A stretch of DNA of 64,000 nt, taken from positions 558,001 through 622,000 of the forward strand of contig CBFDEM010000039.1 of the NCBI GenBank assembly GCA_965603825.1, read 5' to 3'. The stretch is from Blepharisma stoltei ATCC 30299 (taxonomy: Eukaryota; Protista; Ciliophora). The position numbers and the translations under genes are program-made. Under the pieces are notes generated by a model. It was not told the DNA's origin. It worked only from the letters and a program-made list of their open reading frames with translations, and searched no databases. Below, in pieces: positions 31,377 through 64,000 of this stretch. Numbering within the stretch: position 1 is the stretch's first letter; every line of letters starts with the position of its first letter.

Positions 31377-31381
31377 TTTAT

Positions 31382-32571: not shown

Positions 32572-32682
32572 ATAATAACTATTAATTGATAATAGTTATG
32601 CCAAGATTGATATTTTTACTATTTAATGATTATTCTTAAATAATCAACACAGTTACTATTAATCCTTAATGTTAAGGATTAT

Positions 32683-36324: not shown

Positions 36325-36510
36325 CGGCACTACTTCTGAATTTTCTTCTGTGTTTCTCCTGGGATTTTCTTCTATGTTTTCTGGGCTTTCTTCTGAGCTT
36401 TTTTCTATGTTTTCTTCTGGGCTCTCTTTTTAGGTTTACTTCTAGTTTACTTTCGGATTTACTTCTGGGTTTCCTTATGCGTTTCCTTCTGTGTTTTCTT
36501 CCGGCCTTAT
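36325..36510 (-). repeat. Degenerate 12-bp tandem repeat (GAAGAAAACNCA-like; EENP/EENT-type tetrapeptides) within a probable coding relic
   Basis: Roughly a dozen imperfect units on the minus strand, with stops and frame slips. Confidence 0.6.
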
Positions 36511-37127
36511 TCTGGTTTTCCTTCTGCCTATCTCCTCAGCTATCTCTCTTTCCCATTAAACCCTTTTGGCTTTTCGAGCTCTCTGAATTTTGGCACACTT
36601 TTTACTTCTTTTTTTCCTCTCATTTATCTGCCTACTTGATATTTTAAATTCTATAATACTTGAATAAGTTGTTGAAATCAATTTCTTTATTACTAATCCA
36701 AAATAAAAAATATGAAATACTAATTTTATCTTAAATCCTTCCCATCTTTAAAAATATCGTACAATTCAAATTCTGATTTCGCTAAAATCTACTCTATAAG
36801 AATCCCTTATTTATAGGTAAATTCTCAATTAAATTGCATTAAAGCTTTAATAGAAGATATTGCTGCTGTATATAAAAAATTAAAATTATGTTCCAATTTG
36901 AAGTGGCTAATTTGGCTAATATATAAAAATATTGTTCCAATTTAAAGGATAATTAATTCATATTATTAATTAATAGAAATGAATATAACTCTATAATATT
37001 GACACTATTTTTATCTTATTTTGCGCTCTGTAGAGCGATTCTAATCTAATATATCAATTAAAAAGATGAAATCGAGAGCAAAGCATTTACATTAGCAATA
37101 TATAAATATCAATCATCAAAGTTTTAT

Positions 37128-38252
37128 TTAATGAAGGAAAAGTCCAATAATTAATGAAATTCCAAGCACAATCCCCGAGCTCTCATCAGAATCTCCACTA
37201 TCTCCATTATACAGCTTTTTAGCATATACATAACTAGAATCTGCTGTATTTAGCACACATTTTTCACTTCCTATTATATAATTATACTCCTGGAAATACA
37301 CTGTCCAATAATAGTAAGCGTTGAAGTTATTTTCGTCCCAATAATCCTTTATGCAGTTCAATTCTTCTCTTCTCCCTGTATTACATTTTAAAATCGCTTC
37401 ACTTGAATACCATTTGGCTCTAATACTTAACAAAGACAATCCTGGGCCGTCTCCTATGAATAAATTGCAATATGCATTTCCTTCAGAATTGTAGCCACAC
37501 GCACAATATTGATTAGCGACATAAGGTGGGTTAAAAAAATTGTCTGGCTTAGAAGTACAATCACTTTGATCACTACTACACAATGAAGCTGGCTTTGAGT
37601 CTGAGACTTGCAAGCTTGTACAGTAATAATTACCATCTGCTCCATTTTGGGCACAGGTCGTGTATTTGCATAGCATGCTTTGCTGATTATAGCAATATCC
37701 AACAGGAGAGTGAGGGTCAAATGAAAATACTTCATAGCAAGTATTAGTTTCAGGAAGCTCTGACGTGACATTGCAGGCACCATTTTGAACGCAGTCGTAG
37801 TCGCTTGAACACCCTTTTTGGCCAATTTCTATTTGGGGACTGCATATTCCTTTAATGCAAGAATTTCCTGGCATGCATTGATATAATGATGTGCAGAAGT
37901 GGCTCGCTGAATATCCTTGGCATATTCCGTTAGCGCAGTTAGAAGCGGAAAAACCATTATAGCAGTCCGCATTTGTTTTGCATTTTTCGCCGACAAAGCT
38001 CTGGCCAAAGCTAAGAACTGCATCTGTGCAGGTTTTATTATTGGACTCGTCTGCATATACACAAAGCTTATTATCTGGGCATTCTCTTGCATAAGAAGTA
38101 GAGGCTTCTTTATTATTATAAAGGCAAGTGTTAGCAGTAAAAGCCATAGAAGGAGGCTTACAAATGTAGCTTGGACATAGATTTGAGCTTAAAACTGGAA
38201 GGTAAAGAAGTGCGAAATGGAGGAGAAAAAAAGTGTGAATCTTAAAGTCCAT
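37128..38252 (-). CDS. Cys-rich surface protein copy 7
   Basis: 374-aa intact ORF with signal peptide, family motifs and hydrophobic tail. Confidence 0.87.
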   Translation of the reverse strand: MDFKIHTFFLLHFALLYLPVLSSNLCPSYICKPPSMAFTANTCLYNNKEASTSYARECPDNKLCVYADESNNKTCTDAVLSFGQSFVGEKCKTNADCYNGFSASNCANGICQGYSASHFCTSLYQCMPGNSCIKGICSPQIEIGQKGCSSDYDCVQNGACNVTSELPETNTCYEVFSFDPHSPVGYCYNQQSMLCKYTTCAQNGADGNYYCTSLQVSDSKPASLCSSDQSDCTSKPDNFFNPPYVANQYCACGYNSEGNAYCNLFIGDGPGLSLLSIRAKWYSSEAILKCNTGRREELNCIKDYWDENNFNAYYYWTVYFQEYNYIIGSEKCVLNTADSSYVYAKKLYNGDSGDSDESSGIVLGISLIIGLFLH

Positions 38253-39089
38253 TTCTGAATTTATTCAACAATAAGATATTAGATATAAAAATATAAATGC
38301 TTTCAACAAATAGCGAAATTGTTGATATTTAATAATGCAGTAATTTTTTAAAAATCATTTTTGCAAACAATATTGCTTTAAATATAGATACAAACTCATC
38401 TATGACTCAAGCTCAGTAGCGATCTGTTTAATTTTAGATACATTCTGACCTATCCCCGTCAAAATGCCTGCTTGCTTACTTGAGTTTTTATCATGCTGCC
38501 AATTTACTTTTAAAATTCTATTTGAATTTAGTTAAAATAGAATTGCCAAATATCATCATTTATAAATTATTTCCACATTAAATAATATAATTGGTCTCGT
38601 TTTATTACTATATTCTATCTCATTGTAATCAGAGTTAATTTTTATGAAATCCCTAAATCTATATTATTTGAGAAAAGACGAATCCTGAAATCCCTACAGA
38701 TATCTAAGAATTAAATCTATTTATCGAAATTTTTTCGTCTCAGTAATCTCACGTGCAGCTACATGATAAGCCGTGTAGTGCTAAGGATGGAACAAGGTGC
38801 TTCAAAGTCTGATGGAGGGGCTTTTTATAGTCTTAAATAAGGATAATGCTATAATATATCTATGGTAATAAATAGTTTTCATTACAGCTGCTTCTAAATG
38901 ATAATTCTGTATAAATGAAATAAAATTGTAATTTTCTAATTAACCTCAATTATATTTCTCGGAGTTTCATGGTTCTATTCAACTATTGAATTTTATTCGG
39001 TGGGGTTCTTCGCATATTGATAAAAGTATAGAATCGGAAATAAAGCATTTATATTAGTGATGTATAAGACTTAGTAATAGTAGTATTAT

Positions 39090-40223
39090 TTAATGAAGGA
39101 AAATTCCAATTAATAAAGAAATTCCCAAAATTCCCCCTGAGCTATTCTCATCAGAATCTCCACTATCTCCAGCCTCTCCATCATACAACTTTTTAGCATA
39201 TACATAACTAGAATCTGCTGTATTTAGCACACATTTTTCACTTCCTATTATATAATTATATTCCTGGAAATATGTTGTCCAATAATAGTAAGCTTTGAAG
39301 TTTTTTTCGTCCCAATAATCCTTTATGCAGTTAAATTCTTCTCTTCTCCCTGTATTACATTTTAAAATTGCTTCACTTGAATACCATTTGGCTCTAATAC
39401 TTAATAAAGACAATCCTGGACCGTCTCCTAAGAATAGATTGCAATACGAATTTCCTTCAGAATTGTAGCCACACGCACAATATTGATTTGCAACATAAGG
39501 TGGGTTAAAAAAATTGTCTGGCTTAGCAGGGCATCTATTTTGATTAACATCACACAGCGAAGCTGGTTCTGGGTCAGAGACTAGCATCTCTGTACAGTAA
39601 TAATTGTAATCAGCTTTATTTAAGGCGCAGGTCGTATATTTACATAGCATGCTTTGATTATTGTTGCAATCTCCAACAGGAGAGTGAGGCTCAAATGAAA
39701 ATACTTCATAGCAAGTGTTAGTTTGAGGATTACCCGATGTGACATTACAGGCACCGTTGTTTACGCAATCAAAGTCAGATGAACACCCTTTTTGGCCAAT
39801 TTCTATTAGAGGAATGCATTGCTTATTAATGCAAGAATTCCCTGGGTAGCATTGATAGATTGATGTACAACTTTGGCCCATTGGAGTTCCTTGACAAGTT
39901 CCGTCAACGCAGCCAGAGGAAACACCTTTAAAGCAGTCTTTATTTGTTTTGCATTTTTCACCTACCCAGCTATGGCCAAAGCTAAGAGTTTCATCTTCGC
40001 AGGTTTTATTATTAGACCCAGTAGCGTATTTGCAAAGCTTATTACCTGAACATTCTCTAGCATAATAAGTTAAAGCTTCGTTAGTATAATAAAGGCAAGT
40101 ATCAGCAGCAAAAGCCATAGAAGAAGGCTTACAAATGTAACTTGGGCACGGATTTGAGCTTGCAATTGGAAGGTAAAAAAGCATGAAATGGAGAAGCAAA
40201 AATGCTCGAAACTTAAAATCCAT
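39090..40223 (-). CDS. Cys-rich surface protein copy 8
   Basis: 377-aa intact ORF; closest to copy 7. Confidence 0.87.
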   Translation of the reverse strand: MDFKFRAFLLLHFMLFYLPIASSNPCPSYICKPSSMAFAADTCLYYTNEALTYYARECSGNKLCKYATGSNNKTCEDETLSFGHSWVGEKCKTNKDCFKGVSSGCVDGTCQGTPMGQSCTSIYQCYPGNSCINKQCIPLIEIGQKGCSSDFDCVNNGACNVTSGNPQTNTCYEVFSFEPHSPVGDCNNNQSMLCKYTTCALNKADYNYYCTEMLVSDPEPASLCDVNQNRCPAKPDNFFNPPYVANQYCACGYNSEGNSYCNLFLGDGPGLSLLSIRAKWYSSEAILKCNTGRREEFNCIKDYWDEKNFKAYYYWTTYFQEYNYIIGSEKCVLNTADSSYVYAKKLYDGEAGDSGDSDENSSGGILGISLLIGIFLH

Positions 40224-41170
40224 TTCTGAATTTATTCAACAGAGATATTTATGCGTTAAAATATGAATTTTGATTAAATTATATAAGAATTAAGCTTTGC
40301 CTCTATAGCAAGTAAAAATAGGCCAATTCAGCAAATAGCAAAATTGTTGATATTTAATTGTATATTCTATTTCTTTCTGGTCACAATAAATATTTTCAAC
40401 TTTAAGGAAAATAATAAATTTTAAATTAGGCTAAGAATATATAATATTTTATTGCTATTATTAAAAAGTTGTATTTAAAAGGATATAAATTAAGAAAAAT
40501 TAAAAATTGCAAAACCACTTTAAAAATATTATAGTAAATTCAATTAAAATTTTTTAGAAAAGAAATTATAGATAAACTATTGAAAAAATAGTTGAAAAAT
40601 GCATTATCTTTTTTACTTTAGACGACATATCTTTAACAAAATGGCATCTTTTTAAAATTAAAATCCATTTTATTCAATACTGACTTTACTTACATTAAGC
40701 CATCGCAATCTAAATTATGAGTTTACTTCAAGATTCAAGGAAATTTATATACTTAAAGCAAAAATAACTATGAATTAATAAAAAAAAATAGCAAAGCATC
40801 AACTTTTATATTATGTATCTATGAAACTTTATTGGTGAAAATGCTCAAATTTTTACTATAAATAACTTGAAAACTGTTTATTCTTCAAAATAATTTTTAG
40901 CTTGTTTTAAAGATTTCAAGCAAAAATTTTAAGAAATTTATATAAAAGTAAGATATCCGACCTCAAAACTTATAAATCTATATATACAGAAGATCCTAAA
41001 AATAGTGAAAATTGTTAATCTTAATATTTTAATAAGTTTTAAGGAAAATCACTATTAAAAACCTCGAAAAATAATTCTAATTCATTTTTTTGTGCATTTT
41101 CCCCTGCTAATATTCGTCATTAATTCTATTGGAGCAAATAACATTTTTTATAAAATTAAAGATTCCAGCT

Positions 41171-43426: not shown

Positions 43427-46400
43427 TTATTTAAAATCCTTTGCTTTTATATCAAGTTCATTTTCATTTTCAACTCTTGAAATTTCATAAAATGTTTCGT
43501 CTTGCTGTTTTTCTTCGCTATCTTGTGGGGTACAATAAAGTTTATCGACCCAATTTTCCGCATTTCTTTTTAGCACACCCATGAATATTTGCCTCATATT
43601 TTGACCAATAACTTCATTTACGTCAAAATCCACAGATTCTATTTGGGCAGATCGGTCTTTGACAATAGAAAATATCTTCTCTCCTCCTTTGATTACCACA
43701 TGACTATTTTTTTTATGCTCAAACAAACCATCATCAAAGCCATCCATAACCTTTCTCGTAAACTTGCGCCTAAGAAATGGCACAACATTGCTGAGAAGCT
43801 GAATTCCAGCTCCAAACATTTTTAGTACCCAATAATAAATAAAATAAGCGTTAACAATGATAATGACAATAAAAAAGACAACCTTCGTTGCTTCGTCTAA
43901 AGCATCTGTAAGATAGTAAAGTCCACAATAAATTGTGATAGTGGCAACTAAGATTGATCTAATTTCCATACGATTTAAAGCTCTACCATCATATGGCTTA
44001 TTTTGTGCTTGCATTATTAGACAGAGGAGTAGCAAAACCATGACTGTTAATGCTTGGATATCTGTAGAAATGTTTTGCAGAAATACGGAGCAGCAAACTA
44101 TAAGGATTTTTCTATATAAAATCAAGAATTCCCAATAAAATGCATTGGTTTTATAGCCATTAAAAAGGAACCCAAAGCGCAGCCGAATGCTCAAAGTGTC
44201 AAGCTTTCTTCTATTTTTGAATAAAAAATAAAGAGTAATCGTAGGTATTCCGATTCCCCACACAATAATGGCTGGTATTGACACTGTAAAAATATAAAAC
44301 ATATGATTGCCGTCCCAGCACCTTATATTAAGATTATCTACAAGCCAAAATTCTCCAGCCTCAATTTCTCTGCAGCTAAATGAAGAAAACATCGATTTCA
44401 CCAAATTTGGGTGAATTAAAAATAATAAAATAACGACTGTAGATATAAAATCATTGAAAAACGACTCAAAACTCTTCCTATATCATTTTATAAAAGTCCA
44501 GAATAAAAACGACCCACAGCCTATCATTATAGGAATCAAACTCATTATCATCAATTTTTTGAAATACACTTTTTTATTGTCTTTTCCGGTATTCAAAAAA
44601 CAGTCAAAAGAAAAGATTTCGTCACTTACAGATCCTGCATTAGTCTGTATAGAAAATATATTTAATACTGTATCAGGCCATGATAAATTAAAAGTTGTAA
44701 TAAGGACCACAAGCTGCAAATAATTCACAAAAATTTTTATGTAGACTGATTGTAGGGATTTTGGTTTGTAGGCCGAGTTTCGGGTGGTTCTTACCATAAT
44801 AGCGCCTAGCAAAATAGCAGCAGCTATAACACCTATTATGCGAAAAGAGTTAGATAACTCTCCTGGACATTTCCCACAAGTATTTGCACTTATTATAGAA
44901 TATCCATTTTCACATGCTTGGCACATATTTCCTGTATAGCCTTTTTCGCAGAGACCAGTCAGTGATAAATTTGGTGGGCGAGGAGACCCTTTGCATGATG
45001 ATTCTCTTGGACATGCCCAAAAAGTGCTTGACATATTGGAAGATCTTCAATAACCTGCTCGAGGAACCATTGTTCAGTTCCCATAGCATTTTGCTTGACT
45101 GGGGCATTCTATGCATTGAGTGCTCGAGCCATTCAAGCTATAGCTTCCTTTGTCACAGACTTGGCAGTTTAAACCTATTGTAGCCTCTCCAACTACACAT
45201 TTCCTTAATGTAATATTTACATTTACTTCAGAAACGTAAAAAATTTGGCTATTTTTGCTGCTGCTTTCATCTATCCCAGTTGAAGGTATTTTTATAGTAA
45301 TCTCAGAGCCAGGCTCAGCAGAGACTATAAAATTATCAAAAGTATAAAAACCTTTAGAAGCAGTCACCCTAGTCGTTCCTGAAAGTATTACTGCAGAAGA
45401 ATTTTCTGCTAGAAGTTCTGCTGAGCTGGCACTATCAGTAGCAACAATATTTCCATAATAGTCAACTAGTGCTAATTTCAAAGTTTGAGAAGACGCTTGG
45501 CCAGGAGCTACATTTGATAATGAAAAAACAGTTGGAGTAGAAGCAAAACTTTTATCATAACTGACTATTGATCCATTATCGTCTACTGCCATCAATTTTA
45601 CTGCGAAAGAGGCTACATTATCTGCATAAGCAGCACTGTTATTTGTAAAAGTATTACAAGTTAAGACTGGAATAATGTCGTGCCAATTTATGGCACCTCC
45701 GTTATAAGTGGCATAGTTTTCAATGAATTTATTGTATGAGATATTAAAGCTGCAAGTCCAGAAATCTTGGCAAAGTATATTTAATCCTCCACCATTTCCT
45801 GAAACAGGAACAGAAGATGTTGGGATTTCTGTGGTCGATGCCATATTTTCCATAAAAGTGGACGATATAACGCTCAGTTTTATGTTATTGCTATAAATGG
45901 CTCCGCCAAGATCTGCAGAGTTATTTTTAAATGTTGAACGAGAAACAATATAAGCTTGACCTATTTCATTGCCGCTTGTAGTTGCAAGATATAATGCTCC
46001 CCCTGCAATTTCAGCAGAGTTCTCAATAAAATTGCATTTATCAATCTCCATTTTTATACACCCAACACATGAAAATGCACCTCCATTTTCTGAATTTCCA
46101 TATAGAAAGCTAGTTTCATATATATAAGCATTAATCATTTTTTCCCCATAAATAGCTCCGCTTTCATAGCTTTCGAATCAAGAATTTTCTATATTTAATT
46201 CGCTCTCATAGCCTGTAATAACTCCTCCCAAATCGCTACTATATGACGAAAAAAATTCGCTGTTCGAAATATTCAATAAACTCCCCGAAAATGACCATAT
46301 GGCTCCTCCTCCACCAGAAAGTGCCGAATTATGGCTAAAATGACTGCCGCTAATTATAACATTGCTTGACGTAGAAAAAATGGCACCCCCTGAACTGCTG

Positions 46401-49400
46401 CTTTTTCCATACTCAAATGACGAATTCTTTATATTCGCTGTGCTTTGAGTCGTCGCATAAATAAAACTTCCCTGCTCCCCATCCTGCAAATAAAAATCAG
46501 AGTTTATTATGTTAGCCGAGGAAAGAGTTAGCAAAATGCCACCCGTGATCATATTTGCTATATTTTCAGCCATTGAAGAGGAATTTATGGTTATCGCTGA
46601 GTCTAGCAATGCTATAGATCCTTCATTTCCAGCATTATTTAAATGTATTGTAACATTATATAATTCTGATATAGGATTTGAAGCGCCTAATAAATAAATA
46701 GTTGATCCTCTATTTTTGCAGGAATTTTTTTTAAAAATAGAATGGGAAATATAAAAATTTGAATTTTGCTCACTGTAAATTGCACCCCCAGAGTCTAGCG
46801 CGAAGTTTTCCTGAAAAGTGCAAAAATCACATGTTAAATTAGAGGAAGTGCTGATTGCTATAGATCCTCCATGAGAGTATGAATAATTTTCTTTAAAAAC
46901 AGTATTTGTTAGATTTACTGAAGAAAATTCAGAAATTTTGATCCCAGTGGCAAATTTTGATGTGTTGTTATAAAAGATAGATCCATTGTCTTCTAAATAA
47001 TCGTAGTCTAAAGCTATAGTTGATCCTTCATTACTGGAAAATAAGCATGAATTAGTAAAAATATAGGAATAAACATTCGGATTTCCAGAATAAATAGAAG
47101 CTGAGCCTTTATTATGCATAAATTGAGAGTCTTCCACATATAGCGTTCCCGACAATTCAACATAGCTTCCAATTTCAATGTATATTGCTGCTCCAAGCTT
47201 TGCGGAATTATTTATAAAGTAAGATTCTTTAATTTTCAAACTTCCACTTAGGTAAAAAACTGCAAGGGCACCAGAAGTCTTCGAATAATTTTCTTTAAAC
47301 AAGCAAGACTCTATATAAGAGCTTTTATCCACTGCTGTATAAGAGCTAACATACATTCCTGCTCCATATATAGCAGAATTTGAAATGAAGTCTGTATTTT
47401 TTATCTCTAAATACACATTGCTTGAAATCATCCCATTTTCAACATAAATTCCTGCGCCATTAATTGCAGTGTTATTATAAAACAGGCATTTGTCTACATA
47501 AATAAACATATTTGTGCTAATTTGGTTAGAAAAAACTCCTGCACCATACGTAGGAGATGTATTATACTCAAAAGTGTCATTATAAAGCTTTAAAATTTTC
47601 CCACTAAAGTAAATTCCACCTGAATACCCTGAATTTTTTGAAAAAAGTGTGAAATTGACTTCTAATACCTGGGTGCTTCCTGATGAAGCAACTAAGCCAT
47701 ACCCAGGTTGTGCAGTATTTTCGTTATTCAGAAACTTGGAATTATTTATTGTAGTCTGATTTCCTTCATTGAAGCATAAAACTGTGGGAGATTTTGCTGA
47801 AAATCCATAGTTGTAACTAAACGTGACATTATCCAAATTGACAGCATTGGAATTCTCAAAGATCGAGGATGGTTGTGCCATTGAGCAGTAATTTTTGGTA
47901 ATCTCAGAGTTTTTCAGGGTGAAATTCGTCAGATAAGAAAATAAAGACAGTGAGCCGCAGTATAAAGATGTAACGACTAGCTGATTTTTCATATAAATCT
48001 CTGGATCATTTATCCATGAGTTAATTAAAATAGTATTAGCATTGATATCTGAATGAGTGCTTCCTGTATCCCCGTTTGAGTTAATTGTGAGATTATTGAA
48101 AACTAGGTTTACCAGCTTATAGAATTCAATTATCCCGCTGCCTCCATAATAATTGCTATATATATCAGTAGATTCTCAATTAAATCATCTAGGGTTTTGG
48201 TGGGCAATTACCCTGATCCCATTAGAAGTAACTGCTGATATGACGCCGTATAAATATTCTGATTTTACGATAGTGTTGTTTATAAAAAACAAGCTGCCAT
48301 ATTCAACCAAATTATTGTAGACTTCAAGGGCAGCTAGGTTGTAATTTTGCAGCTCACATAGATAATTAGCTGACAGAATCCCAAAATTAATCCCTATATT
48401 GTTATAAAATTTTGATTCTGAAATGGTTACATGGTCGATTGTATAATCAATAATTTCATTGAATATATTCACTTCTTGACTCAATGCCAAATTACTGGCA
48501 CTTATAAAAATCAATCCATCCTCTGCATAATTGTAAGAAAATTCACAATTTCCAATAAAAAGAGTTCGGAAAGCTTCTAAGTAAAGCAAACTTCCAGCAC
48601 CATCAGCTGCAGGATCTGATATAAAATTGTTTTTGAAATTTACATTGGTAATACTTACACTTTTGACTCTCTTGGCTGCCAAGAATCCCATTATTACCAA
48701 GGAACTGTCATACTCAAATCCGTTATTCAGCTTCTCTACATTTCCGATATTATAATAAAAATTGCCGCAATCATAAGTATTTGATCCACAGTCTGCGAAA
48801 ATTATGACGCTAGAGTTTTCAAAAGGCGCAGTCCGAATATTACTAAAATTCACATTTTCGAGCTCAACATCTCCTCCGTAACTGTAAATAAGTGAATTTT
48901 CTTCTAACCTCCAATTCGTAAAATTGACATTTTTCAGCAGTAAATGACTATTTTTAGGAATTTCAAATAAATTTCAGTCGTAATTTTCTTTGCATAATTC
49001 TGAGTCTAAAAACTCTGTTGTTGTTTTGCCTCTATCATCTTCATAACTCCCATCGAAAATCTGCGTAACATGAGGACAATAAGAGCACAAATTGCTTGGT
49101 AAGCCACATTTCGTACTTTCTGTTTTTCACTGAAAAGAGTCAAAATTTACATTGCTAATTGACATGTAAAGAGTATTTTTCAGTGTTATTGTTATTATAT
49201 TTTTGTTCAGATAAGGCTTCAAAGTTACAATTGAACCATCAGTTGTCGTGATTGTAAGATTTTGACGAATAATTTGCATATTATATGGTTTTAAGCTGCC
49301 TTGCGTACCTATTTGAATAGGAGAAATTTCATTTACCTCAGTTAAATAATGGATCCCTGGGGTAAGATAAAGAATTGAGTATTTCGCGATTATTGATACT

Positions 49401-50815
49401 AATGCAAATGATAAGGATTTAAATGGCTTTGCCATGCTTCCATCACCTCCGGAGGTCTCAGATACATTCCAGTTCACATAATAAATCGCCGGGTTTTCCA
49501 AGCTTGAGGTTTCTGCCTTTAAAATGCAAATTCAAGTCTCATTCAAAAAATGCAAAGGCTTGAACCCTGATGGGCATTCATCTAAACAGTACCCATAGAG
49601 CTGATAATTATTCAATATTGACGAATCACACTCGTAGCAATCCCCCATCTCATTGCCATAACACTTCAAGCACTTCGGGTCAGCGCATTTAGTTTGGTTC
49701 TGAGGAGAACAACTGCACGAAGAAAACCCACAATACTCATTATTGCAGTTTGGGTCACAAAAATTCGGATTAAACAAATTTTTCGTCTGGCATTTAGTTT
49801 CGGTTTTGCATTGCTTTAGGCTTGGGGCTTGTGAAAAATTTAAACTCATGAACTGTAAGCGCATATAAAATAATGATAAATTTGTGTTCTTGCATCTTTG
49901 GTTTGGAGTTGAGCCGATTTGGTCTCATAAACAGTCAACAACCATGCAACCTTCAGAGCAGTGCCCATAATTATTAATATTGCAGGTAGATGTACACTGG
50001 CAGTCTCCTCCATCTCAATTGCAATTAGCATTATTGCATTGAGGCTGGCATGTTCCATCTCCAATATACCCACTTTTGCATCCATTTGAGCACTCACAAG
50101 CATAATTATCATAATTGCACTCAGAAACATTACAAAGCGCATCACAATCATTATTATTAAGTAAATCTGAGCTACATCCTGGGCTGCAGTCACAGTCAGT
50201 CAAATCTCATCCGCATTCTTCATTATAGCATTCCTTATCACATACAGTATTATTTAGCATATAAGTATGGCACCCAGGAGCACATGTAAAATTTTCGCAG
50301 TCTCCAAAATCATAGTTACAGTTTGAAACATCACAAGCTGGGTCACATTTTCCATCTCCAAGAATGTTTGCTGTACAATTTTCGCTGCAGTTTTGGCAAA
50401 GACCAAGTCCATAGTAGCAAGAAGCCGTATTACAAGCAGAATAGCAGCTGCTTCCAAGCATTTTGTCATAGCCTAAATAGAATTTACAATTAGAAGAGCA
50501 TATTCCACAATCGCCCAAATCATAGGCACAAGTCCAGCTGTTACACTCTTGATTGCAAAATCCATTACCGAGCTTATTGCTTTGGCACTGATTCCTATAA
50601 ATACAATCAAAATAGCAATCAGAATCAGCAATTTTGCCTGTTTTCGAATCGTAGTTGCAGTAAGGATTCATACAATTTTGGTCGCAGTGGCCATCACCTA
50701 TCTATGTAAAAATTACAAATGAATCTGGGCATAATTTTTTGTTGCAAGTAATCGTCAAAGAGAGGGTAAAGGGAATAATCGAGAAAATTATAAGCAGCAC
50801 GATGCCATATGACAT
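43427..50815 (-). CDS. Giant membrane protein copy 1 (2457 aa): signal peptide, ~7 LNR repeats, Pmp-like beta-helix, Cys-rich stalk, ~9 TM; intron 50702-50716
   Basis: Nine track ORFs share one frame, and the gaps I translated contain only TGA; ATG 50815; GDGxCDxxCNxxxCxYDxGDC repeats; GGAI/FxxN repeats; TAA 43427. Confidence 0.88.
50702..50716 (-). other. 15-nt intron GTAATTTTTACATAG
   Basis: GT..AG, A10, in-frame TAG if retained; removal gives CPDSF|IGDGHCD; same position as in the paralogue. Confidence 0.9.
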
Positions 50816-51028
50816 TTTGCTAAAAAGATATTTAATAAAATTATTTAAAGATCTGGGAGAATTAATATAAGGCATCCGTGGTTTATTTCGTTATTGCTAT
50901 CAGTATACAAATAAAAAGTTATGAAATTTTCAAAAATTTTAAAAAAATGCTTGATAATGCAAAATTACACCCTAGAAATTTATATCAATTTGAAACTCTT
51001 TAGTTAGTTATCTACAGAATCAAATTAA

Positions 51029-54000
51029 TTATTTTGTATCAGATTTTACCATTTTTCCATCCGTTTCTGTTTTGTTGTCAAGTCTAGAAATTTCATCATA
51101 TGTAGATGGGTGCTCTATATGAATCTCCTCACTGTCAACAAATGAAGAAAATAATTTATTTTCTTCTGAACCTTTTTTCACCATGCTCATAAATACTTGC
51201 TTCATATTTAGATTAAAAATTTCGGCGGCATCAAAATTTTCAGATAATGAGTTTGGGCTGTTTTTTACTATAGAAAAGATCTTTTCTCCTCCTTTAATCA
51301 TTACATGCCTTTCAATATTCTCTTCAAATAAAGCATCATCAAAGCCATCCATCACCTTTCTATGGAATCTATTTCTAAAAAAAGGGATTTTTTCACTTAA
51401 GTATTGAATCCCAGCTCCAAACATTTTCAAAACCCAGTAGTAAATAAAATAGGCATTCACCAGGACGATAGCAATAAAAAACACAACTTTTGTAGCTTCA
51501 TTTAAAGCACCAGTTAGATAATAAAGTCCACAATATATTGTAATTGTAGCAACTAAAATTGATCTAATTTCCATTTGGTTTAAAATGCTCCCGTCATAAG
51601 GCTGGTTTTGAGATTGCATAATTAAACAAAAAAGAAGCAATACCATCACAGTCAATGCTTGAATATCTGTAGAAATATTTTGCAGAAAAACAGAGCAGCA
51701 CACTATAAGAATTTTTCGATACAGTATCAAGAATTCCCAATAATATTTCCTAGCCTTATACCCATTAAAAAGGAATCCAAATCTTAGCCTTATACTTAGC
51801 GCGTTTAAATGTCTTCTATTTTTCCATAAAAAGAATAAGGAGACGGTAGGGATTCCAATTCCCCACACTATAATAGAAGGAATAGACACTGCAAAAATAT
51901 AAAACAAGTGATTATCATCCCAGCACCTTATTTCCAAATTATCGACCAGCCAGAATTCCCCAACGTCAATTTCTCTGCAACTAAACGAAGAAAACATCAC
52001 TTTTACCAAATTTGGGTGGATTAAAAACAGCAAAATAACGATAGTAGACACTAAATCATTGGTAAAGGTTAGAAAATTCCCCCTATGCAGCATCATGCAA
52101 ACCCAGAACAAAAGTGACCCGCAGCCAATAGCAATAGGAATGACGCTCATAATAATCAGTTTATTGAAATAGACTTGCTCCATTCCTTCCCCAGTATCTA
52201 AAAAACAGTCAAAAGAAAATACTTCGTCACTTACAGACCCTGCACTGCTTTGGACAGAAAAAAGCTGCAAAACTGTATCTGGCCATTCCAAGTTGAAGGT
52301 GGTAATGAGTATAACGAGCTGCAAATAATTTACGAAAATTTTGATGTAGACTGATTCAATTGATTTCGGCTTATAGGCAGAATTCCGAGAAGTTCGGACC
52401 ATAATAGCCCCCACAATGATCGCTGCAATAACAATGCCGATTACTCTGAAAGCATTAGAAACTGGGTCAGGGCATTTTCCACAAGTATTTGGATTCGTTC
52501 TTGAATATCCTGAATAGCAGGCTTGACACATATTTCCATGGTAGCCTTCCTCGCAACGGCCTGTCAAAGAGAAATGCTCTTTGCTCGATCCTTCACATGC
52601 CGATTTCTTTGGACAGGCCCAAAAAGTGCTTGACATATTAGAAGACCTTCAATATCCTGGCAGAGGGACCATCGTGTAGTTTCCATAGCACTTCGCTTCA
52701 CTTGGGCAATCTATGCAAGCAGTATTCTCGCCATCTAAGCTGTAACTTCCTTTATCACATACTTGGCAGTTATTTCCAACAGTGGCTTCTCCAATAATGC
52801 ATTTTCTTAGCGAAATATTTACCTTCACAGTTGAAATATAAGTAATTTGGCTACTATTTGACTTTGTTGAGTCTATTCCTGTTGAATACACTTCTATGTC
52901 AACATCAGTGCCAGGTATTGCTCAAACGATAAAATCATTAAAAACATACACCCCTTTTGCTGCCGTCACTTTTGTGGTCCCAGAGAAGGTTGTTGTCGAA
53001 GAGTTTGTAACCAAAAGTTCAGCTGAGCTCGAGCTATCTGTGGTAACGATATTATTGTAATAATCCACCAATGCAATCTTTAACGTTTTCGAAGACGTCT
53101 GTCCTGGTGCTAAATTTGATAAGGAAGTCGCTAAAGGGGCACTTTCAAGCCTTCGTTGGTATCCAATCAGTTCTCCATTTTCATCAAGGGCTACTATTTT
53201 TACCGCATAAGAGCCAATATCGTCACCATAAGCCGCAGTATTATTGGCAAACACATTTCCTGACAATACCGGCATGATGTCTTCAAAGTTGAGAGCTCCA
53301 CCATCATAGGTTGCGAAGTTATCAACAAAAGTATTGCTCGAGAAATAAAATTCACAGGTCTTGAAATCTTCACAGAGAGTATTAATAGCACCCCCGTTAC
53401 CATCTACTGGTGTAGTTGCTGTAATCGGGTCATCGGTGATTGCGGAGTTTCCTGAAAATGTGGAAAAAGAAATATTCAGCTTGACGTTATTGCTATAGAT
53501 CGAGCCTCCGATTTCTCCTCTGTTGTTTTGAAACATTGTGTTTGAGATTATATAAGAGTTAGCTATTTCGTTATCATTTGTAGTTCATATGTACAAAGCG
53601 CCTCCCAAGCGTTTTGCTCTATTTTTAATAAACTCAGAATCATAGATTTCCAGCTCGACGCAGCCAGTGCATGATAAGGCGCCTCCACTTGGAGAGTACC
53701 CATTATAAAATTGGCTTCCTTTGATTCAAATGTGCATCATTTTTTCTCCACTTATGGCGCCCATAGAAAAGGTATCAAAGTAGGAGTTTTCGACATACAA
53801 GTTGCTTTCGTAGCCTACTATGACTCCTCCCAAGTCATTACTGCTTGAATTAATGAATTTGCTGTCTGTGATGTTTAATGAACTTCCCGAGTATGATAAA
53901 ATTGAACCCCCTCCTCCAGAATAGGCAAAATTCCCACTGAAGGTGCAGCTGCTTATTATAACTTCACTGGCTGTAGAAAACACTGCACCTCCTGAGTTGC

Positions 54001-57000
54001 TACTTTTGCCATTGTTAAAGAAGCAGCCTTGGATAATCGCTGTACTTTGTGTGGTCGCATATAAAAAGCTGCCTTGAACACTTTGTTGCGAATAAAACGT
54101 GCTTTTAGTGATTGTGGCAGTTGAAAGAGTAAGTAAAACTCCTCCTGTGACCATTTTCGCTGAGTTTTCATGCACTTTGGATGAAGTGATGTTTATTGCG
54201 GAGTCAAGCAGTGCTACAGAACCTTCATTATAGGCATAATTTGAAGCAATCGTTACATTATGCAGCTGAGATACAGGACTTGGAGATCCTAACAAATAAA
54301 CCGCTGAGCCTTTATTGGTAGATATGTTTTCTTCGAAGACTGAATGGGATACATTGAAAACAGAATCCTGCTCGTTGTAAATTGCTCCTCCAGAGTCATC
54401 TGCAAAGTTTTTTTGAAAGCTGCAATAATTGCAGGTCAAGTTAGAGTTTCCAGCAACGCTTATTGCCCCTCCATGTGACGATGAATTATTTTCTTCGAAT
54501 ATTGTGGCTGTGAGACTGGCTGATGCGTTATCGTCCATTCTGAGTCCTCCGCCTACCATTCCTGAATTGTTTTTGATGATGGACCCATTATCAACCCATG
54601 AGTCGTAGTCCAAAAATACAGCAGATCCTACATTATTTAGAAAAGAGCACGATTTTGTTACCACAAAAGAAAAAATGTCAGCATTTGAAGCATATAAAAC
54701 GGCACCCCCACTGTTATAAAGAAACTCAGTGTTTTCTATATAAAATGTCCCTGAGTATTGCAGATCAGGACCGATTTCTAAATAAATCGCTGATCCAAGC
54801 CTAGCTGTGTTTTTATAAAAAACAGAGTTTGAGATGCTCAATGTGCCACTTGAATATAGAGCTGCAATGGCCCCTGATATTTTCGCTGTGTTTTCTTTAA
54901 ATGTACAATTGTAGAGGAAAGAGCCTGCAGCTATTGCAATGGAATCCTCCAAGTATATTACAGAACCGTATTCTCCATAATTCGACTCAAAAGTTGTGTT
55001 CTTTATTGCCAAGTATATTGTATTTGTGGAGATTCCTTCATTTTCCATATAGACTGCTCCACCATTTATTGAAGAACTTTTGTAAAATGTGCAAGAGTCT
55101 GCATATACGGACAGTGTCCCAGAGCTTAATTGGCTAATATACAAGCCTGCCCCATGGGTAGGAGAGCCATTATATTCAAATGTGTCATTATAGAGCTTAA
55201 CAATACTTCCAACAAAATAAATCCCTCCTTCTGAAGCATAATTTTTATAAAAAAGCGTCGAATTGACTTCTAAGACCTGGGAACTACCTTTGGCATAAAT
55301 AAGTCCATACCCAGTATCAGCGTAATTTGTGTTATTCAGAAACTTTGAGCTTGTTATGCCAGTTTGATTCCCATTATTAATGTACAGCACTGTAGAGAGG
55401 CTCGCTGACCACCCATAGTTCGAGTTAAACGTTGTATTAGTAAAATTGACTACATTGGAGCTGTCAAAGTTTATGACAGGATTAGATTCAGAGCAGTAAT
55501 TGTTTGTGATTTCAGAGTCTTTAATAGTGATATTTGTGACTATGGAGAAAGCAGACATATATTCGCAGGTCAGCTGGTTGGTTTTGATCTCATCTTTCAT
55601 ATACATGTCTGGGTTATTAATCCAAGAGTTGAATACAATGGTGTTAACGTTTATGCCTGTGTTTAACCTTTCTGTATCTCCATTTGAGTCTATTGTGACC
55701 CCACTTATAAAAATATTGAAAATTTTGGTCAAATAAAAAATTCCATTGCTTCCTGAATAGTTGTTTTTGATTGTGCCTGAATATCAGTTGAACCAGCGAG
55801 GGTTTTGATGGGCTGTGATCCTATAACCATTATCTGTAGTCACTGTTCCTGTTGTTCCATATATATATTCGTTTTTTACTACTGTGTTGTTTAATACAAA
55901 AAAACTGCCTGACTCGACTACGTTATTTTGTATATCAAGAGAATCTATATGATAATTTTGTAGTTCAGGGACATAATAGGCTGCAATAATTCCAATGTTT
56001 ATCCCATAATTATTGTAAAACTTCGATGACTTTATTGTGACATGATCTATTGTATAGTCGATAATTTCATTATTATCTACAGTCTGCTCCAAAGCCAAAT
56101 TACTCGCAAGTATAAATATAATACCGTTCTGGACATAATTGTACGAAAACTCACATTTTTCAATATACAGCGTCCTAAAGATTTCTAAATAAAGTACACT
56201 TCCTGCATCATCAGCTTCAGGATCTGATATAAAATTATTTTTGAAATTTACATTTGCAATACTAACACTTTTGGCCTTAAGAACTCTCAAAAACCCCATT
56301 AATATCAGAGAGCTGTCATACTCAAATCCATTATTTAATTTCTCTACATTTCCTTTATTATACTGAAAATTCCCACATTCATAAGTAGCTGATCCACAAT
56401 CAGCAAAAATAATGACACTAGAGTTTTCAAACGGAGCAGTTCTTATATTGCTAAAATCAACGCTCTCTAGGTCAAGATTTCCACCATTGCTGGAAATCAA
56501 CGAGTTTTCTTCTAATCTCCAATTCGTGAAATTTACATTTTTCAGCAATAAGCTGCAATTTCCAGGAATTTCAAATAAATTCCAGCCATGGTTTTCTGCG
56601 CATTCATCAGCATCCAGAAACTCAGTTATGGCTTCCCCTCTATCATTTTGATAAGTTCCATCAAAAATCTGTGTAACATAAGGGCAATAAGAACAATATT
56701 CACTGGAAGAGTTGCATTTACTTTTTTCGCTCTCCCAGTAATAGGCATCAAAGTTTATATTGGTAAAAGACATATAGACAGTGTTTTCAAGGGTTATTGT
56801 AATTGTGTCTTTGTTTGGGTAAGGCTTTATTGTTGGGGTTGAGCTATCACTTGAAGTTATTGTCAGATTTTGGCGCACAACTTGATAATTATAAGGCCTT
56901 GAGGCATCTGCAATGGTTACATAAATTTCTGAATTTTTGTCTACCTCGGTCAAATAGTGGTACCCTGGAGTCAGGTACACAATTGAGTATGCTGTACTTA

Positions 57001-58417
57001 TAGAAGCCAATGCTAGTGATAGTGTTTTTCAAGGCTTCGCTATAGTCCCATCCCCTCCTAAAGAGTCAGTTGTATTTCAGTCCACATAATAAACTGCTGG
57101 GTTATCTGCAGTGGACTTATCTTCTTCAAGCACACAAATTCAAGCCTGCTCTAGAAAATGCAGAGGCTCATACCCTGTGGGGCATTCTTCAACACAATAT
57201 CCAAAGAATTGATAGTTATTTGAGACTGACGAATCGCATTCGTAGCACATGCCAAGGTCGTCTCCATAGCATTTTAAACAGTTTGAGTCTGCACAAACTG
57301 TTTCATTATAAGGAAAACAGTTGTATTGGGACCACCAGCAGCGGTCATTATTGCAGTCGCTGCTGCAGGTTTCAGGAACAGCTAAATCAGCCGCTGTACA
57401 ATTAGTTTTCTTTAAACAGCTTTTTATAGTTGGAACTTCTGTAAAATTGTTGTTCATTAGCTGCAAACGCATGTAAAATATTGATAAATCTGTATTACTG
57501 CATCTTTTGTCTGTGCTTGTGCTTATCTGATCTCATAAGCAGTCTGCAACCATGCAGCCTTCAGAGCAGTTACCGTAACTATTAATGTTGCATGTAGATG
57601 CGCATTGACAATCACCGCCATCTCAATTACAATTTTCGTTATTGCATGCAGACTCACATGTCCCATTTCCTATAAAGCTGTCAAAGCAGCCAGAAGCGCA
57701 GTCACCGCATGCATGGCTATCAAAATCGCACTCAGCAACATTGCAGACCGCATCACACCCTGAGTTATTAAGCTCAGTTAAGGTACAGCCTGGGCTACAA
57801 TCACAATCTGTCCCGTCTCAACCACATTCTTCATTATAGCATTCTTTATCGCAGACAGTGTTATTCAGCATATTAATATAGCAGCCAGAAGCACAAGCAG
57901 AGGTTTGGCAGTCTCCAAAGTCATAATTACAACTTGAAACGTCACAAGCTGAGTCACAATTTCCATCTCCAAGGAGACTTGATGGACAATTCTGGCTGCA
58001 GTCTTGGCAAAGACCAAGTCCATAATAGCAAGAGGCCGTATTGCAAACAGAATAGCAGCTGCTCCCCAGCATTTTGTCATAGCCTAAATAGCATTTACAA
58101 TTAGAAGAGCATTTGCCACAATCGCCTAAGTCATAGGCACAAGTTCAGCTATTGCATTCAGAATTACAAGTTCCATCACCTAGCTTTGATAATTGACACT
58201 GAGTTCTGTAAATACAATCAGAATAACAATCAGAATCAGCGATTTTTCCTGTTTTTGAGTCATAATTGCAGTAAGGATTCATACAATTTTGGTCGCAGTG
58301 ACCATCGCCAATCTATATAGGGCTCACAAATGAATCTGGGCATAGATTTTTATTGCAAGTAATAGTCAATGAAAAAGAAACTGGGATATGTGAGAAAATG
58401 ATAAGAAACATAATCAT
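51029..58417 (-). CDS. Giant membrane protein copy 2 (2457 aa), same architecture; intron 58313-58327
   Basis: All track fragments are in one frame and colinear with copy 1; ATG 58417. Confidence 0.87.
58313..58327 (-). other. 15-nt intron GTGAGCCCTATATAG
   Basis: GT..AG, A10, in-frame TAG; position conserved with copy 1 while the internal sequence differs. Confidence 0.9.
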
Positions 58418-59478
58418 TTTGTATTTATAAATATTATGGTCTTTTAGGCTGACAATCAAATAATACTAATTGATTAATAAGATTCTTAGTGCTTTTTCTC
58501 TTTTATTTAAAATATAAAAGGCTTGCTCTTATTTTACTGTTAAGGGAAAAAGGGAGAACACAATTTTAATTAATAATTGTAAAGAGGAATAATTTACGTT
58601 AATCACAATTTAGCCTTTTTAAGTCTAAATTCTTAAATTTCATAAGTCCGTAAATTTGCTCTCAAATTTTTATTAAATCTATTTTATTTCTCAAATAAGC
58701 CCATTGAAAAATTAAAAATCAGTAATTATATCAGCGAAAGCACAAATGGTTCAATAAAAGCATTTCTATTTTATAAATTTTTATAGTGCTTTTTTTGCAG
58801 CTTAAGTCCTTTCTAATGTGTATTTGTAACAGAAATAAAGAAAGAAATCATTATTCAATTCCGCTTGCGTCTTTTCTCAAGCATTAATTTCTAACTTATT
58901 ATAAAAAAAACGCATAAACTAAAAAAATTATAAGCGTATAGAAATAAATAACATCCTGGTATTAATTAAATTGCATCAAGGATAAGAGTAAAAACTAAAA
59001 CTAAATCATATTAATTTAGTAAAGTATACAGAGTAGAGTTAAAAGATCTTACTAAAATTTTCATCTATTAGAATTCAATTTAATCCTAAATATTTTTATA
59101 AAATTTTAGCCCCTGGTCCTATTTTTTATTGTCGTCATTCATAAAATGCTAAAGATGTTAAGAAAACAGTATGCCATTTTTCAATAAGTCATGCCATATA
59201 AGTTCTTTTGTAATATTCTTATAAAGTCGCAAAGAATTGGCTCTACAAGTAAGCAATAGGGACTAACCTAAGATTACATTTTGTTTTGGATCCAACTTAA
59301 CCCAACAAGATTATTGGTCGTCAGATATTACTGAATGATTAAATTTTGGCTTAGCTAATTGCCATGATTTCAATGCTCACGCAAATATTAATTATTGGCT
59401 AATTATTTGTAACGTTCGGCATATTTCAATTCGAAGCCTGGACTGAAATGCAACGGATATTAATAAAATTTTCAAATA

Positions 59479-62400
59479 TTAATAGTAAATATTTTTATTA
59501 TTACTTTGATTGTTGAGCTCCCTCAGACTAAATGTTCTTGATGGTGGAAATTCATCTTTTGACTCTTCTTCTAGCATCGTTGCAGAGCGATTGCCTTCAT
59601 GAGTAAACAGATCTTCTACAACCTCGACTTTTCTATTTTTTTCATTAGCGTGACGGTGAACAATGCCCAAAAATAAGTCCCTCATATCGCTATTCAGTGC
59701 CTTTTCAAGATCATCATCAAGAGGAATGCTAGGCACAGGATCATCACCTGGAATAATCGAGAAGAATTTGTCGCCTTCTTTTACAATAACATGAGCAGGA
59801 TGCTTCTTCTCAAAAATATCGTCACTTAGCCCGTCCAAAACGCGTCTGCTGAACCTCTTCCTCAGGCAAGGTACGAGATCACTTGCTATTTGAAGATAGG
59901 CTCCAAACATTTTTTTTACCCAGTAATTTAAGAAATAGATGTTTATTCCGCAAATTACAAAGAAAAAGACATTTTCAGAAACAGAGTCCAAAGAGTCTGT
60001 TAAATAGTAAAGGCCGCAGTAGATGGTTACTGACGCAACCATGATTGATCGGAGCTCCATTTGATTTAAAACTTCTCCATTGTAAGGCTTCTTATCATTT
60101 TGTAAATAAAGGCAAAACAAGAGCAGAATCATGACAGTTAATGCCTGGATGCTAGTAGAAATATTTGCTAAAAATACTGAACAGCACACAATCAAAATTT
60201 TCCTATATAAAATGATGAATTCCCAATAGTAGGCTCTATATTTATAGCCGTTGAAAAGAAATCCGAACTTCAATCTGACACTAATAGTATCCAAGGCCCT
60301 TTTATTTCTCCACAAAAAGAACAAGCTAACAGTTGGAATCCCAATTCCCCACACAATGATAGAAGGAACCGCTACCACCAAAGAGTAAAAGATATGCCTT
60401 GAGTTCCAACATCTGATATCCAAATTGTCCACTAGTCAGTATTCTCCACTATCGAGTTCTCTACAAGAAAACACCCCGAACATTGCTTTCACCAAATTGG
60501 GGTGGAAAAGGAACAGCAAAATGACAATGGTTGAGATCAAATCATTTTTAAAGGTTTTCGCTGATCGCTTGTAAATAGCCATCGTCCCCCAGAAGAGTAA
60601 AGATATTAATCCAATTACTATTGGGATAAGACTCATGAGGATCAGCTTATTGAAATAAACTTGATCCATGCCTTGTCCAGTGTCTAAGAAGCAATCAAAA
60701 GAGTAGGCCTGCTCACTTACAGACCCTGCTTGACTTTGAACAGCAAAGAGATCCACAACCAGGCTAGGCCAAGACAAATCAAAAGTAGTCATAAGCATAA
60801 TCATTTGCAAGTAGTTCGCAAAAATTTTGATATAGACTGAGTGAATTGCTTTGGGTTTGTAGGCACTGTTTCGGGTTGTCCTGACCATGACTCCACACAC
60901 AATAATAACTAGAATGCAAATCCCTATGACCTTAAAGGAATTGGTAACTTCATCAGGGCATTTCCCACATGTGTTTGAGCTTGATCTTGAGTAGCCTGTA
61001 TCGCAAGCTTGGCATAAGTTCCCTGTGTATCCTGTGCTGCACTCCCCTGTGTAAGAGAGATTTTTAGTAGAACTATAAGCCCCTCCTAAGCAGGCTGCCG
61101 AATTAGGGCAAGCAATGAAATTGTCTGAGTATTTGCCAGATCTCCAATAGCCACTTTGTGGAGCCATTGTCCAATTCCCATAGCAAGTAGCTGAATGTGA
61201 CGGACAAGTGAGACATTGGGTGTTGCTGGGGTCTAAGCTATAAAATCCTGAAGCACAAACTTCACAATTCACTCCAACTGTTGCTTCACCTATGATACAC
61301 TCTCTCATAGAAACAGCAACATCTACGGTGCTGGTAAAAGTTGCACCAGGAAGCTTGCTTTGCTTCGAAGTATCAATGCCTGTAGAAGTCACGTAAATTG
61401 ACACATCTGAGCCCGGCTCAGCAGAAACTATGAAACTCGGAAAGTAGTAGACCCCTTTCTGTGCTGTAGCTTTTGTAGTGCCTGATAGTGTCGTTGAAGT
61501 AGAATTCGTTGGGTATAATTGAGCTGTGCTGGAGCTGTCAGTCAACACTATGTTTCCGTAATAGTCTACCAGAGCTAATCTTAGCTCACTGGTCGTTTCC
61601 TGTCCTGACGCAATGCCTGATATTGACGTAGCAGTTGGGTTATCTTCAAGCCTTCTGGTATAGTCCACCAGCTTGCCATTCGCATCCACTGACATTAATT
61701 TTATTGCAAATGAAGAAATTTCTGCCGCATAAGAAGCTTTGTTGCCCTTAAAAGTATTATTAGTCTCAGAGGGACTGATATCTTCCCAGTTGATTCCTCC
61801 TCCATTGTATGTTGCTGTATTATTAAAAAATTTGTTAGAAGTCAAGTTAAATACGCAGCTTGTAAAATCTGTGCAGGCCAAGTTTATTCCTCCTCCGTTA
61901 CCTGTAGTTGGTATTGACCCTGTGTTTGTTTCTGTTGTGGTAGCATTGTTTCCTGTGAATTCTGAGTTGGAAACATTCAAATTAATATTATTTGTGTAGA
62001 TTCCTCCCCCTAATATGGCTGAGTTGCTATTAAATGTAGAACTTTTTATGATGTATGGATTCGTGATCTCGGTGTCGCTGGAAGTTGACAAGTACAAAGC
62101 TCCACCTTCTTCAGCAGTATTCGATTCGAAGGTGCAGCTAGTTATAGTAATTGATTCACAGGATACGCAGGTAAGTGCACCTCCACTTGCGCCAACTCCG
62201 TTGAGGAACTGAGAATTTTCGAGTTTCACTGAGTTCATTTTGGAGCCATAAATTGCGCCCCATTTGTAGTTCTTCATCACGGTTTTGGATACTTCGAGGT
62301 CGCTCTCATATGAATTGATGACTCCTCCTACATCTTTACTGTAGGAGTCAGTTAAAAAGCTGTTTTTGATAGTCAAAATGCTGCTGGAGTATGCTAGGAT

Positions 62401-64000
62401 TGCTCCACCTCCTCCTGTAGTTGCATTTGACCTTGTAAAAGTACAATTGTCCATAGTCACAGTACTAGAAATGGAAAAAATGGCTCCGGCTGAGCTGGTA
62501 CTAACTCCATCTGTAAAGGTAGAGTTATACATATCTACCTCGCTCTGGGTTGTAGCATAAATAAAGCTCCCCTGATCCCCACTTTGGCTATAAAACTTCG
62601 AATTCGAAATAGTCGCATCAGACAGTGTCAAAAGCATCCCAGGGGTTATTGAAGTAGCTGTATTTTTGTAAACAGTGGTCGTGTCTATGTTGATAGAAGA
62701 ATCAAGAAGGGCAATTGAGGCTTGATTGGCAGAACTGTTTTCGTGGACTGTTGAGTTCTTGAGAAGAGAAGTTGGTGAAGAAGAGCCCAACATATAAATG
62801 GCTGCTCCCTTATCAGTGCACTCATTTTGGTATATGAAAGAATTGGTGATGTTAAAGTAGGATTTCTGCTCGCTAAAGATGGCTCCTCCTGAGCCTCCAG
62901 CTGTATTTTCTTCAAAAGTGCAGTTTAGGCAGTAAAATGTAGATGCTGAGCCTAATGAAACGGCTCCGCCATCCTGAGTGGCTGTGTTTGAAGAGAAAAC
63001 TGTGTTAGTGCATTTAGCAAATGAAGCGTCAAGCAGCTTTATGCCTCCAGAAGCTTTCCCAGAATTATTTTCGATGACTGAATCTGAGTCAATCCAATAA
63101 TCGTAGTCCATTCACACTGGTATACCAGTGTTGGATGAGAATGTGCATGTATCGGTCTCAATGTGAGAATAAACATCTGAATTTGTCATATAAAGCACAG
63201 CAGCTCCTGAGTTTGAAGTAAATTTAATGCTCTTCATAAGTGTTTTGCAAATCGTGATGTCACTTTCAGTCGCAGTTTCCAGATATATTCCTGACGCTAC
63301 TCTCCCAATATTTGAGCTGAATTCACAGTTTTCTATATAAAAAGTCCCATCAGCAAACAAAGCTGAGAGGGTGCCTGAACTGGTCGCATTGTTTTTAGAA
63401 AAAGTAGTAGAGACAATTGACGAAGTTTTGTACTCATAGATTTTTAAGGCACTGCCCATATAAATTGCAGAACCATATCCACCTGTATTCTCAGTGAAAG
63501 TGCAAGATTCTACATTGAATATAATTGAGTTATATACGGCTCCTACATTTTCAAAGTATAGTCCGCCGCCATAACTAGACCCCAGGTTATTAGAAAAAGT
63601 GCATGAGACTGCTGTAATTGTAATTCTTCCTGTGGCGGTCTGCTGGATGCAAACTCCTCCACCATTTTTGGAAGCAGTATTTTTATTAAAGGTATTATCA
63701 TACATATAAAGATTCACCCCTGCAAAGAAAAGGCCACCTCCAGTCGTGCCTATATTCGACTCAAAAGTAGTTTCGTTAATTGTCATATTTAAAGCGCTCC
63801 CATCTGCACCGATAGCCCCATATCCTGTCTCTGCTAAATTTTCATTAGATTTTATAGAGCAGCTCATTATATGCGTTTCGTTGCCTCCATTTATATACAA
63901 TGAAGTTGGGTATTTGGTTGATTTTCCTGTATTGCCGCTAATAGTCACATCATTGAAAACATTGATGTTTGAGCTTGATACAAGTACATATGGTGTTGAA
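59479..64000 (-). CDS. Giant membrane protein copy 3 (5' part outside the window)
   Basis: Three track ORFs in one frame joined by TGA; same beta-helix, Cys-rich and multi-TM layout. Confidence 0.87.

Follow-up and report, generated by a model that had tools for sequence, protein, structure and literature searches.

The 64,000-nucleotide window analyzed here (Blepharisma stoltei ATCC 30299, contig CBFDEM010000039.1, positions 558,001 to 622,000 of the forward strand) carries on its minus strand three tandem genes, designated A, B, and C, for giant membrane proteins that combine LNR modules, a long beta-helix, and a block of transmembrane (TM) helices, and it raises the question of the receptor family to which such proteins belong and of what they do at the cell surface. 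The initial annotation read them as surface receptors with LNRs and a Pmp-type beta-helix, which stands, but overlooked their nearest kin. Judged by sequence, the closest characterized relatives inspected are the alveolate CRMPs, much nearer than the fungal FLC/Pkd2 proteins, and the Blepharisma proteins very probably belong to the CRMP / TRP-like nine-helix superfamily. The LNR-tipped architecture and the size of the family are new, the proteins themselves being already public as uncharacterized LNR proteins.

All three genes are real. Three long minus-strand frames (2425, 2428, and 1507 codons) are open only if TGA is read as sense, and are broken into fragments by the standard code and by codes in which TAA/TAG are reassigned. 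In an alignment of the three paralogs, Trp is the commonest partner in TGA columns (9 of 22) and Cys does not occur, which rules out TGA as Cys. The published B. stoltei macronuclear genome uses TGA for Trp and has 15-nucleotide (nt) introns (PMC9942806), and the code and intron size of the window genes agree with it. Two complete genes and a partial third had been recognized correctly, but the 2457 residues then assigned to A and B are obtained only when the stop-containing intron alone is spliced out; both proteins have 2452 residues, because a second, stop-free 15-nt intron is also removed. The five residues encoded by this intron are absent from paralog P0076 and likewise from P0084, and the two-intron model of gene B is letter-for-letter identical to P0085 (CAG9326024.1, 2452 aa), labelled "LNR domain-containing protein" at NCBI. 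A further 15-nt intron candidate in gene B (56185-56199) was rejected, since it is retained in that public protein, which equals the two-intron model. The genes were thus not invisible to annotation, as had been supposed: gene A is also public, as P0084 (2409 aa), the same protein from residue 44 on. P0084 starts 43 codons late and therefore lacks the signal peptide along with exon 1; with this exon and the 15-nt intron (window 50705-50815) restored, gene A has a start like that of gene B. The 5' part of gene C (P0082) lies beyond the window and includes LNRs (C39 ~624300-624900), so that these repeats are not limited to the two complete copies, and a fourth family gene comes next (C39:628175-635422). 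Identity is 63% between proteins A and B and ~48% between C and either of them. Window proteins were searched as separate pieces between TGA codons, later profile searches used public full-length proteins, and the spliced models were compared locally only.

The C-terminal core carries the assignment to the CRMPs. In the AlphaFold model the TM domain consists of nine long helices (pLDDT 83), in line with the approximately nine first counted, and gene B, starting at its Cys stalk and continuing through the last helices, is colinear with the cores of TgCRMPa and PbCRMP1/2 as aligned by eye (PMC9815656, supplement S2). Motif pairs recur across the CRMP cores and gene B (SIHSIVIKI/SIESVYIKI, SVDCLL/SFDCFL, VWSIGIP/VWGIGIP, KYGFLHNG/RFGFLFNG, and QPFD/QPYD, with YWE..RK in common), the spacing of the Cys stalk matches that of TgCRMPa, again by eye, and the best ungapped block, 61 residues from TM5 to TM6, is identical at 25/61 positions in TgCRMPa and 27/61 in PbCRMP2 (41–44%). 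Ahead of TM2 the motif follows the CRMPa type, although this may just be the ancestral state. The conserved core of CRMPs has been described as EGF-like units followed by nine TM helices, with Eph-like, Ig-like, furin-like, and parallel beta-helix domains among the listed accessory modules (PMC9815656). The Blepharisma layout agrees with both, featuring Cys/EGF-like units directly before the membrane and nine TM helices.

The likeness of the TM block to the fungal FLC/Pkd2 TRP-like domain, proposed in the initial annotation, also holds, if at a distance. PF06011 scores 24.2 bits for gene B and 23.6 bits for gene A (E 2–3e-4), short of its cut-off of 28.5, and is matched by 14 of 44 homologs (best E 1e-6, top homolog score 28.2 bits). 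An Ig fold precedes the nine helices, with the Cys stalk between them, and there is no match to the TRP_N family. Pkd2 is predicted to contain an Ig-fold domain and nine helices (bioRxiv 10.1101/2022.08.11.503631), and the reconstituted fission-yeast protein passes calcium on stretch (PMC9727806). This precedent, the PF06011 similarity, and a set of polar residues conserved within the helices (E305, R311/K312, Q330, N357, and E360 in the numbering of the TM piece) would fit a core that conducts calcium on its own as a channel gated by tension or contact, with the rod as its tether, in keeping with the idea of the initial annotation. Such a channel is nevertheless unlikely, given that the PF06011 scores remain under the family cut-off, that no solved channel fold matches, that the CRMP literature consulted reports no channel activity, and that some 70 diverged ectodomains fit ligand variety better than force sensing. 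Comparison of the TM domain with solved structures returned nothing significant by sequence or fold, channels and G-protein-coupled receptors (GPCRs) included (best Z 8.0, partial helical bundles). Matches in a predicted-structure atlas span the stalk and the TM domain (TM-score ~0.7–0.73) and fall in Eph-like/DUF7630/TRP-like clusters of chlorophytes, cnidarians, and haptophytes, with sponge clusters also present, so that the nine-helix module is pan-eukaryotic. Outside the family, PF06011 also matches C43:501723-541997, C33:3108-3752, and C29:40384-40818, one of them above the Pfam cut-off, and these loci may represent a second nine-helix family or encode heterodimer partners.

The Pmp-type GGAI/FxxN beta-helix of the initial annotation is supported. 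The predicted beta-helix extends over ~1300 residues and contains 30–33 FxxN and 11 GGA[ILVF]-type motifs, and PF02415 (Pmp repeat) scores 22.5 bits for gene A, above the 20.6 cut-off, and 19.5 for gene B, slightly below it; the C-terminal beta-barrel of Pmp autotransporters is absent. The entry motif of the gene B beta-helix is DUF1565-like, which is a lead only, and the beta-helix found no match among solved structures. The best structure matches of the juxtamembrane domain are Ig-fold domains (Z 7–8), with no GAIN domain among the top matches, and its identification as a GAIN or SEA/HD domain is ruled out by a model that folds as an Ig sandwich. The Cys stalk matches the Cys-rich region of EphA2 (E 9e-4). 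An RRL motif, which may be a convertase site, lies in an Ig-domain loop of gene B (aa 1745-1747, around window position 53150) and in the gene C piece (aa 782-784); gene A is without it, and an R[RKL]L pattern occurs near this site in just 37 of 130 relatives.

At the far end of the ectodomain, the signal peptide and seven LNRs first described are borne out. PF00066 matches one piece with E 1e-18 and the full gene B protein with 88.8 bits (E 3e-25), above its cut-off, the six-Cys spacing and calcium-site Asp residues are present, and a local hidden Markov model (HMM) counts seven repeats. The two C-terminal Asp residues of an LNR are part of its calcium site. This pair is intact in repeats 2, 4, 5, and 7, stands around a loop insertion in repeat 1, is half kept in repeat 6, and is absent from repeat 3, a pattern common to A, B, and C. 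The furin-like segment said to follow has no Pfam match in the corresponding gene A piece and amounts to a Cys pattern. The nearest solved LNRs are those of GlcNAc-1-phosphotransferase (best match) and of the Notch2/3 regulatory region (E 2e-6). The latter likeness, together with the cleavage of TgCRMPa near its N-terminus, could be taken to indicate a Notch-like sensor that responds to force by proteolysis, its cleavage site being covered by the LNRs. The order of domains, however, largely refutes this reading and makes it scarcely credible: the LNRs lie ~1700 residues from the membrane, the full protein has no Pfam match to the NOD/NODP families of the heterodimerization domain (HD), an Ig sandwich occupies the juxtamembrane position, the membrane domain has nine helices, and the best solved matches are phosphotransferase repeats, which are not force sensors.

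The window genes are members of a large family. In the 41,464,486 bases of the genome (64 contigs), the TM piece of gene B has at least 81 matches, corresponding to at least ~72 loci after merging of fragments, a lower bound because 80 of 95 candidates were scored. When LNR and TM matches are paired by hand from their coordinates, an LNR block lies ~4–7 kb upstream on the same strand at no fewer than 66 of the ~72 loci. Among full-length database relatives, LNRs are present in 38 of the 41 from B. stoltei and in 43 of the 83 from other sources; many of the relatives lacking them are N-terminally cut gene calls, and a few seem truly LNR-less. As many as 15 LNRs occur in environmental relatives, and in one environmental contig of 50% GC five extra codons, a stop among them, stand at the site of intron 1, which suggests another heterotrich with 15-nt introns. 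Relatives of the core are also present in Fabrea salina and Stylonychia lemnae. In a FastTree phylogeny of the stalk and TM core, a single clade with support 99 takes in 37 of the 41 B. stoltei proteins; A and B are sister sequences. Together with the LNR-bearing environmental relatives, this tree indicates that the architecture predates Blepharisma and that the expansion is mostly lineage-specific. Two full-length environmental proteins, P0133 and P0134, pass from the signal peptide straight into the beta-helix without LNRs, and their branching outside the LNR-bearing group suggests that the LNR cap is a later addition. A literature search on LNRs with Blepharisma, Stentor, or ciliates, incomplete in its coverage, returned no description of LNR-tipped CRMP-type proteins.

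The family is under purifying selection, which is strongest on the TM core: the ratio of non-synonymous to synonymous substitution rates (dN/dS), taken between A and B, amounts to 0.08 for the TM domain, 0.11–0.21 for the ectodomain, and 0.31 for the tail, values that are rough because of near-saturation at synonymous sites. A non-signalling surface coat or a set of variant antigens on a vestigial nine-helix anchor would agree with the tandem arrays, the 46–48 NxS/T sites per protein, the poorly conserved tail, and the existence of broken copies, yet it is quite improbable for a core that is the most constrained part of the protein and keeps the CRMP motifs. The broken copies, truncated, frameshifted, or stop-ridden, are found at C51:752970-754475, C1:61137-62783, C1:166313-167700, C39:327829-329117, and C64:371328-372239, and may reflect birth-and-death evolution or assembly errors.

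What such proteins do is suggested by their characterized relatives. TgCRMPa, whose N-terminus lies outside (PMC9670195), pairs with CRMPb and is required for rhoptry discharge at host contact (PMC9670195, PMC9815656), mucocyst discharge fails in Tetrahymena CRMP1/2 knockouts (PMC9670195), and heterotrichs discharge cortical granules at predators or when attacked (PMC9774955). From these roles, and by analogy, the Blepharisma proteins are tentatively read as a diversified repertoire of contact receptors linked to a response of the cell cortex, with extrusome discharge as the likeliest form. In the proposed mechanism, the signal peptide would send the ectodomain outside, making the protein a plasma-membrane receptor, and the beta-helix would form a long rod holding a calcium-stabilized LNR cluster far from the membrane. 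Rod and tip would bind the surface of another cell, whether predator, prey, or partner, and the Ig domain and Cys stalk would relay this binding to the nine-helix core, for which a second nine-helix protein is the probable partner, after the example of TgCRMPa and TgCRMPb. The core would then start a calcium-dependent cortical response. Discharge of extrusomes, here toxin-filled pigment granules, would be its most likely form because this is what the characterized ciliate and apicomplexan members do, and ~70 diverged paralogs would broaden the range of surfaces recognized.

The same features could serve recognition in feeding or pairing, that is, oral prey capture, phagocytosis, cannibal feeding, or contact during conjugation, rather than extrusome discharge. 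Pmp-type beta-helices act as adhesins, the family is large, with a mean beta-helix identity of 33–37%, and its expansion is specific to the lineage; still, the characterized relatives serve regulated exocytosis, and this alternative is not very likely. Several observations also weigh against a contact receptor for extrusome discharge. The CRMP comparison was made by eye and has no computed E-value, TtCRMP1/2 have been described with five predicted TM helices and other ectodomains, and, the nine-helix module being widespread, CRMP homology leaves the output of the core unfixed. Furthermore, in four sequencing runs that are only guessed to be RNA, 22–24 of 30 gene B bins are covered, in short contigs that stop short of both introns, so that these runs do not demonstrate splicing or a continuous mRNA.

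A bolder extension would make the LNR-tipped CRMP-type proteins contact- or tension-gated calcium channels and the touch receptor repertoire of heterotrichs, serving the contraction and habituation of Stentor and Spirostomum and the granule discharge of Blepharisma. Highly improbable as it is, this extension would, if true, also assign a channel mechanism to the apicomplexan CRMPs, which in Toxoplasma gate host-cell invasion. The advance made here concerns domain architecture and family size rather than mechanism. Calcium-binding LNR arrays are now placed in a unicellular receptor unrelated to Notch, and the ~70 intact paralogs of a free-living ciliate lineage, sharing a core under distinct LNR/beta-helix ectodomains, offer a natural series for probing the role of the core and the targets of the ectodomains.

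The features of the three genes are collected in Table 1. Elsewhere in the window, two plus-strand frames of 539 and 978 codons at 12645-17100 are open only with TGA as sense, and several minus-strand open reading frames of similar size (370–420 codons) occupy 24521-40289.

Table 1. Coordinates of genes A, B, and C and of their parts within the window
Feature	Position	Strand	Remarks
Long TGA-sense frames	43427-50701, 51029-58312, 59479-63999	minus	2425, 2428, 1507 codons
Gene A	43427..50815	minus	2452 aa; three exons, 50815-50717, 50701-50488, 50472-43427
Gene A intron 1	50702..50716	minus	15 nt, in-frame TAG
Gene A intron 2	50473..50487	minus	15 nt, stop-free, in frame, within LNR3
Gene A seven LNR repeats	49994..50752	minus	PF00066
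Gene A beta-helix region	45620..49504	minus	GGA[ILVF]/FxxN repeats, PF02415
Gene A nine-helix TM domain	43778..44857	minus	78% identical to gene B TM domain
Gene B	51029..58417	minus	2452 aa; three exons, 58417-58328, 58312-58099, 58083-51029
Gene B intron 1	58313..58327	minus	15 nt, in-frame TAG
Gene B intron 2	58084..58098	minus	15 nt, stop-free, within LNR3
Gene B signal peptide	58364..58417	minus	aa 1-18, hydropathy
Gene B seven LNR repeats	57602..58363	minus	aa 19-262, PF00066 and local HMM
Gene B two degenerate LNR-like units and furin-like Cys segment	57113..57601	minus	pattern only
Gene B beta-helix region	53222..57112	minus	~1300 aa; GGA[ILVF] motifs in C-terminal half
Gene B Ig-like beta-sandwich	52802..53221	minus	aa ~1723-1862, model pLDDT 94
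Gene B Eph/TNFR-like Cys stalk and DUF7630-like unit	52463..52801	minus	PF07699 and PF24633, both weak
Gene B nine-helix TM domain	51383..52462	minus	colinear with CRMPa-clade cores
Gene B cytoplasmic tail	51032..51382	minus	largely disordered; ~20% mean family identity
Gene C	59479..64000	minus	residues 975-2480 of public protein P0082

Set against known systems, the Blepharisma proteins share parts with four. With the Notch NRR (the regulatory region), the Stealth-family GlcNAc-1-phosphotransferase, and the pappalysins they have in common six-Cys LNRs in which the calcium-site Asp residues are mostly kept, but here seven repeats (up to 15 in relatives) stand at the far N-terminus of a protein with a multipass core and, unlike Notch, without a heterodimerization domain. 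The GGA[ILVF] and FxxN repeats and the right-handed beta-helix recall the Chlamydia Pmp adhesins (PF02415), whereas the autotransporter barrel is replaced by the helical membrane domain of a eukaryotic secretory protein. The fungal PF06011 proteins (S. pombe Pkd2, Trp663, and Trp1322; Flc) likewise have nine predicted helices after an Ig fold and match through a weak profile similarity that stays below the Pfam cut-off; in Blepharisma a Cys stalk separates the Ig and TM domains, and the ectodomain comprises ~2000 residues as against ~150. With the CRMPa clade (TgCRMPa, TGGT1_261080; PbCRMP1/2) and TtCRMP1/2 the proteins share a signal peptide, a large Cys-rich ectodomain, and a Cys stalk leading into a nine-helix core whose motifs are colinear; the CRMP family also includes members with beta-helix, Ig-like, Eph-like, and furin-like modules. 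Where CRMPs carry MAR/Kringle domains, a long insert between TM3 and TM4 in the core, and 2–4 paralogs, Blepharisma has an LNR cluster at the tip, no such insert, a beta-helix of ~1300 residues, and ~70 paralogs.

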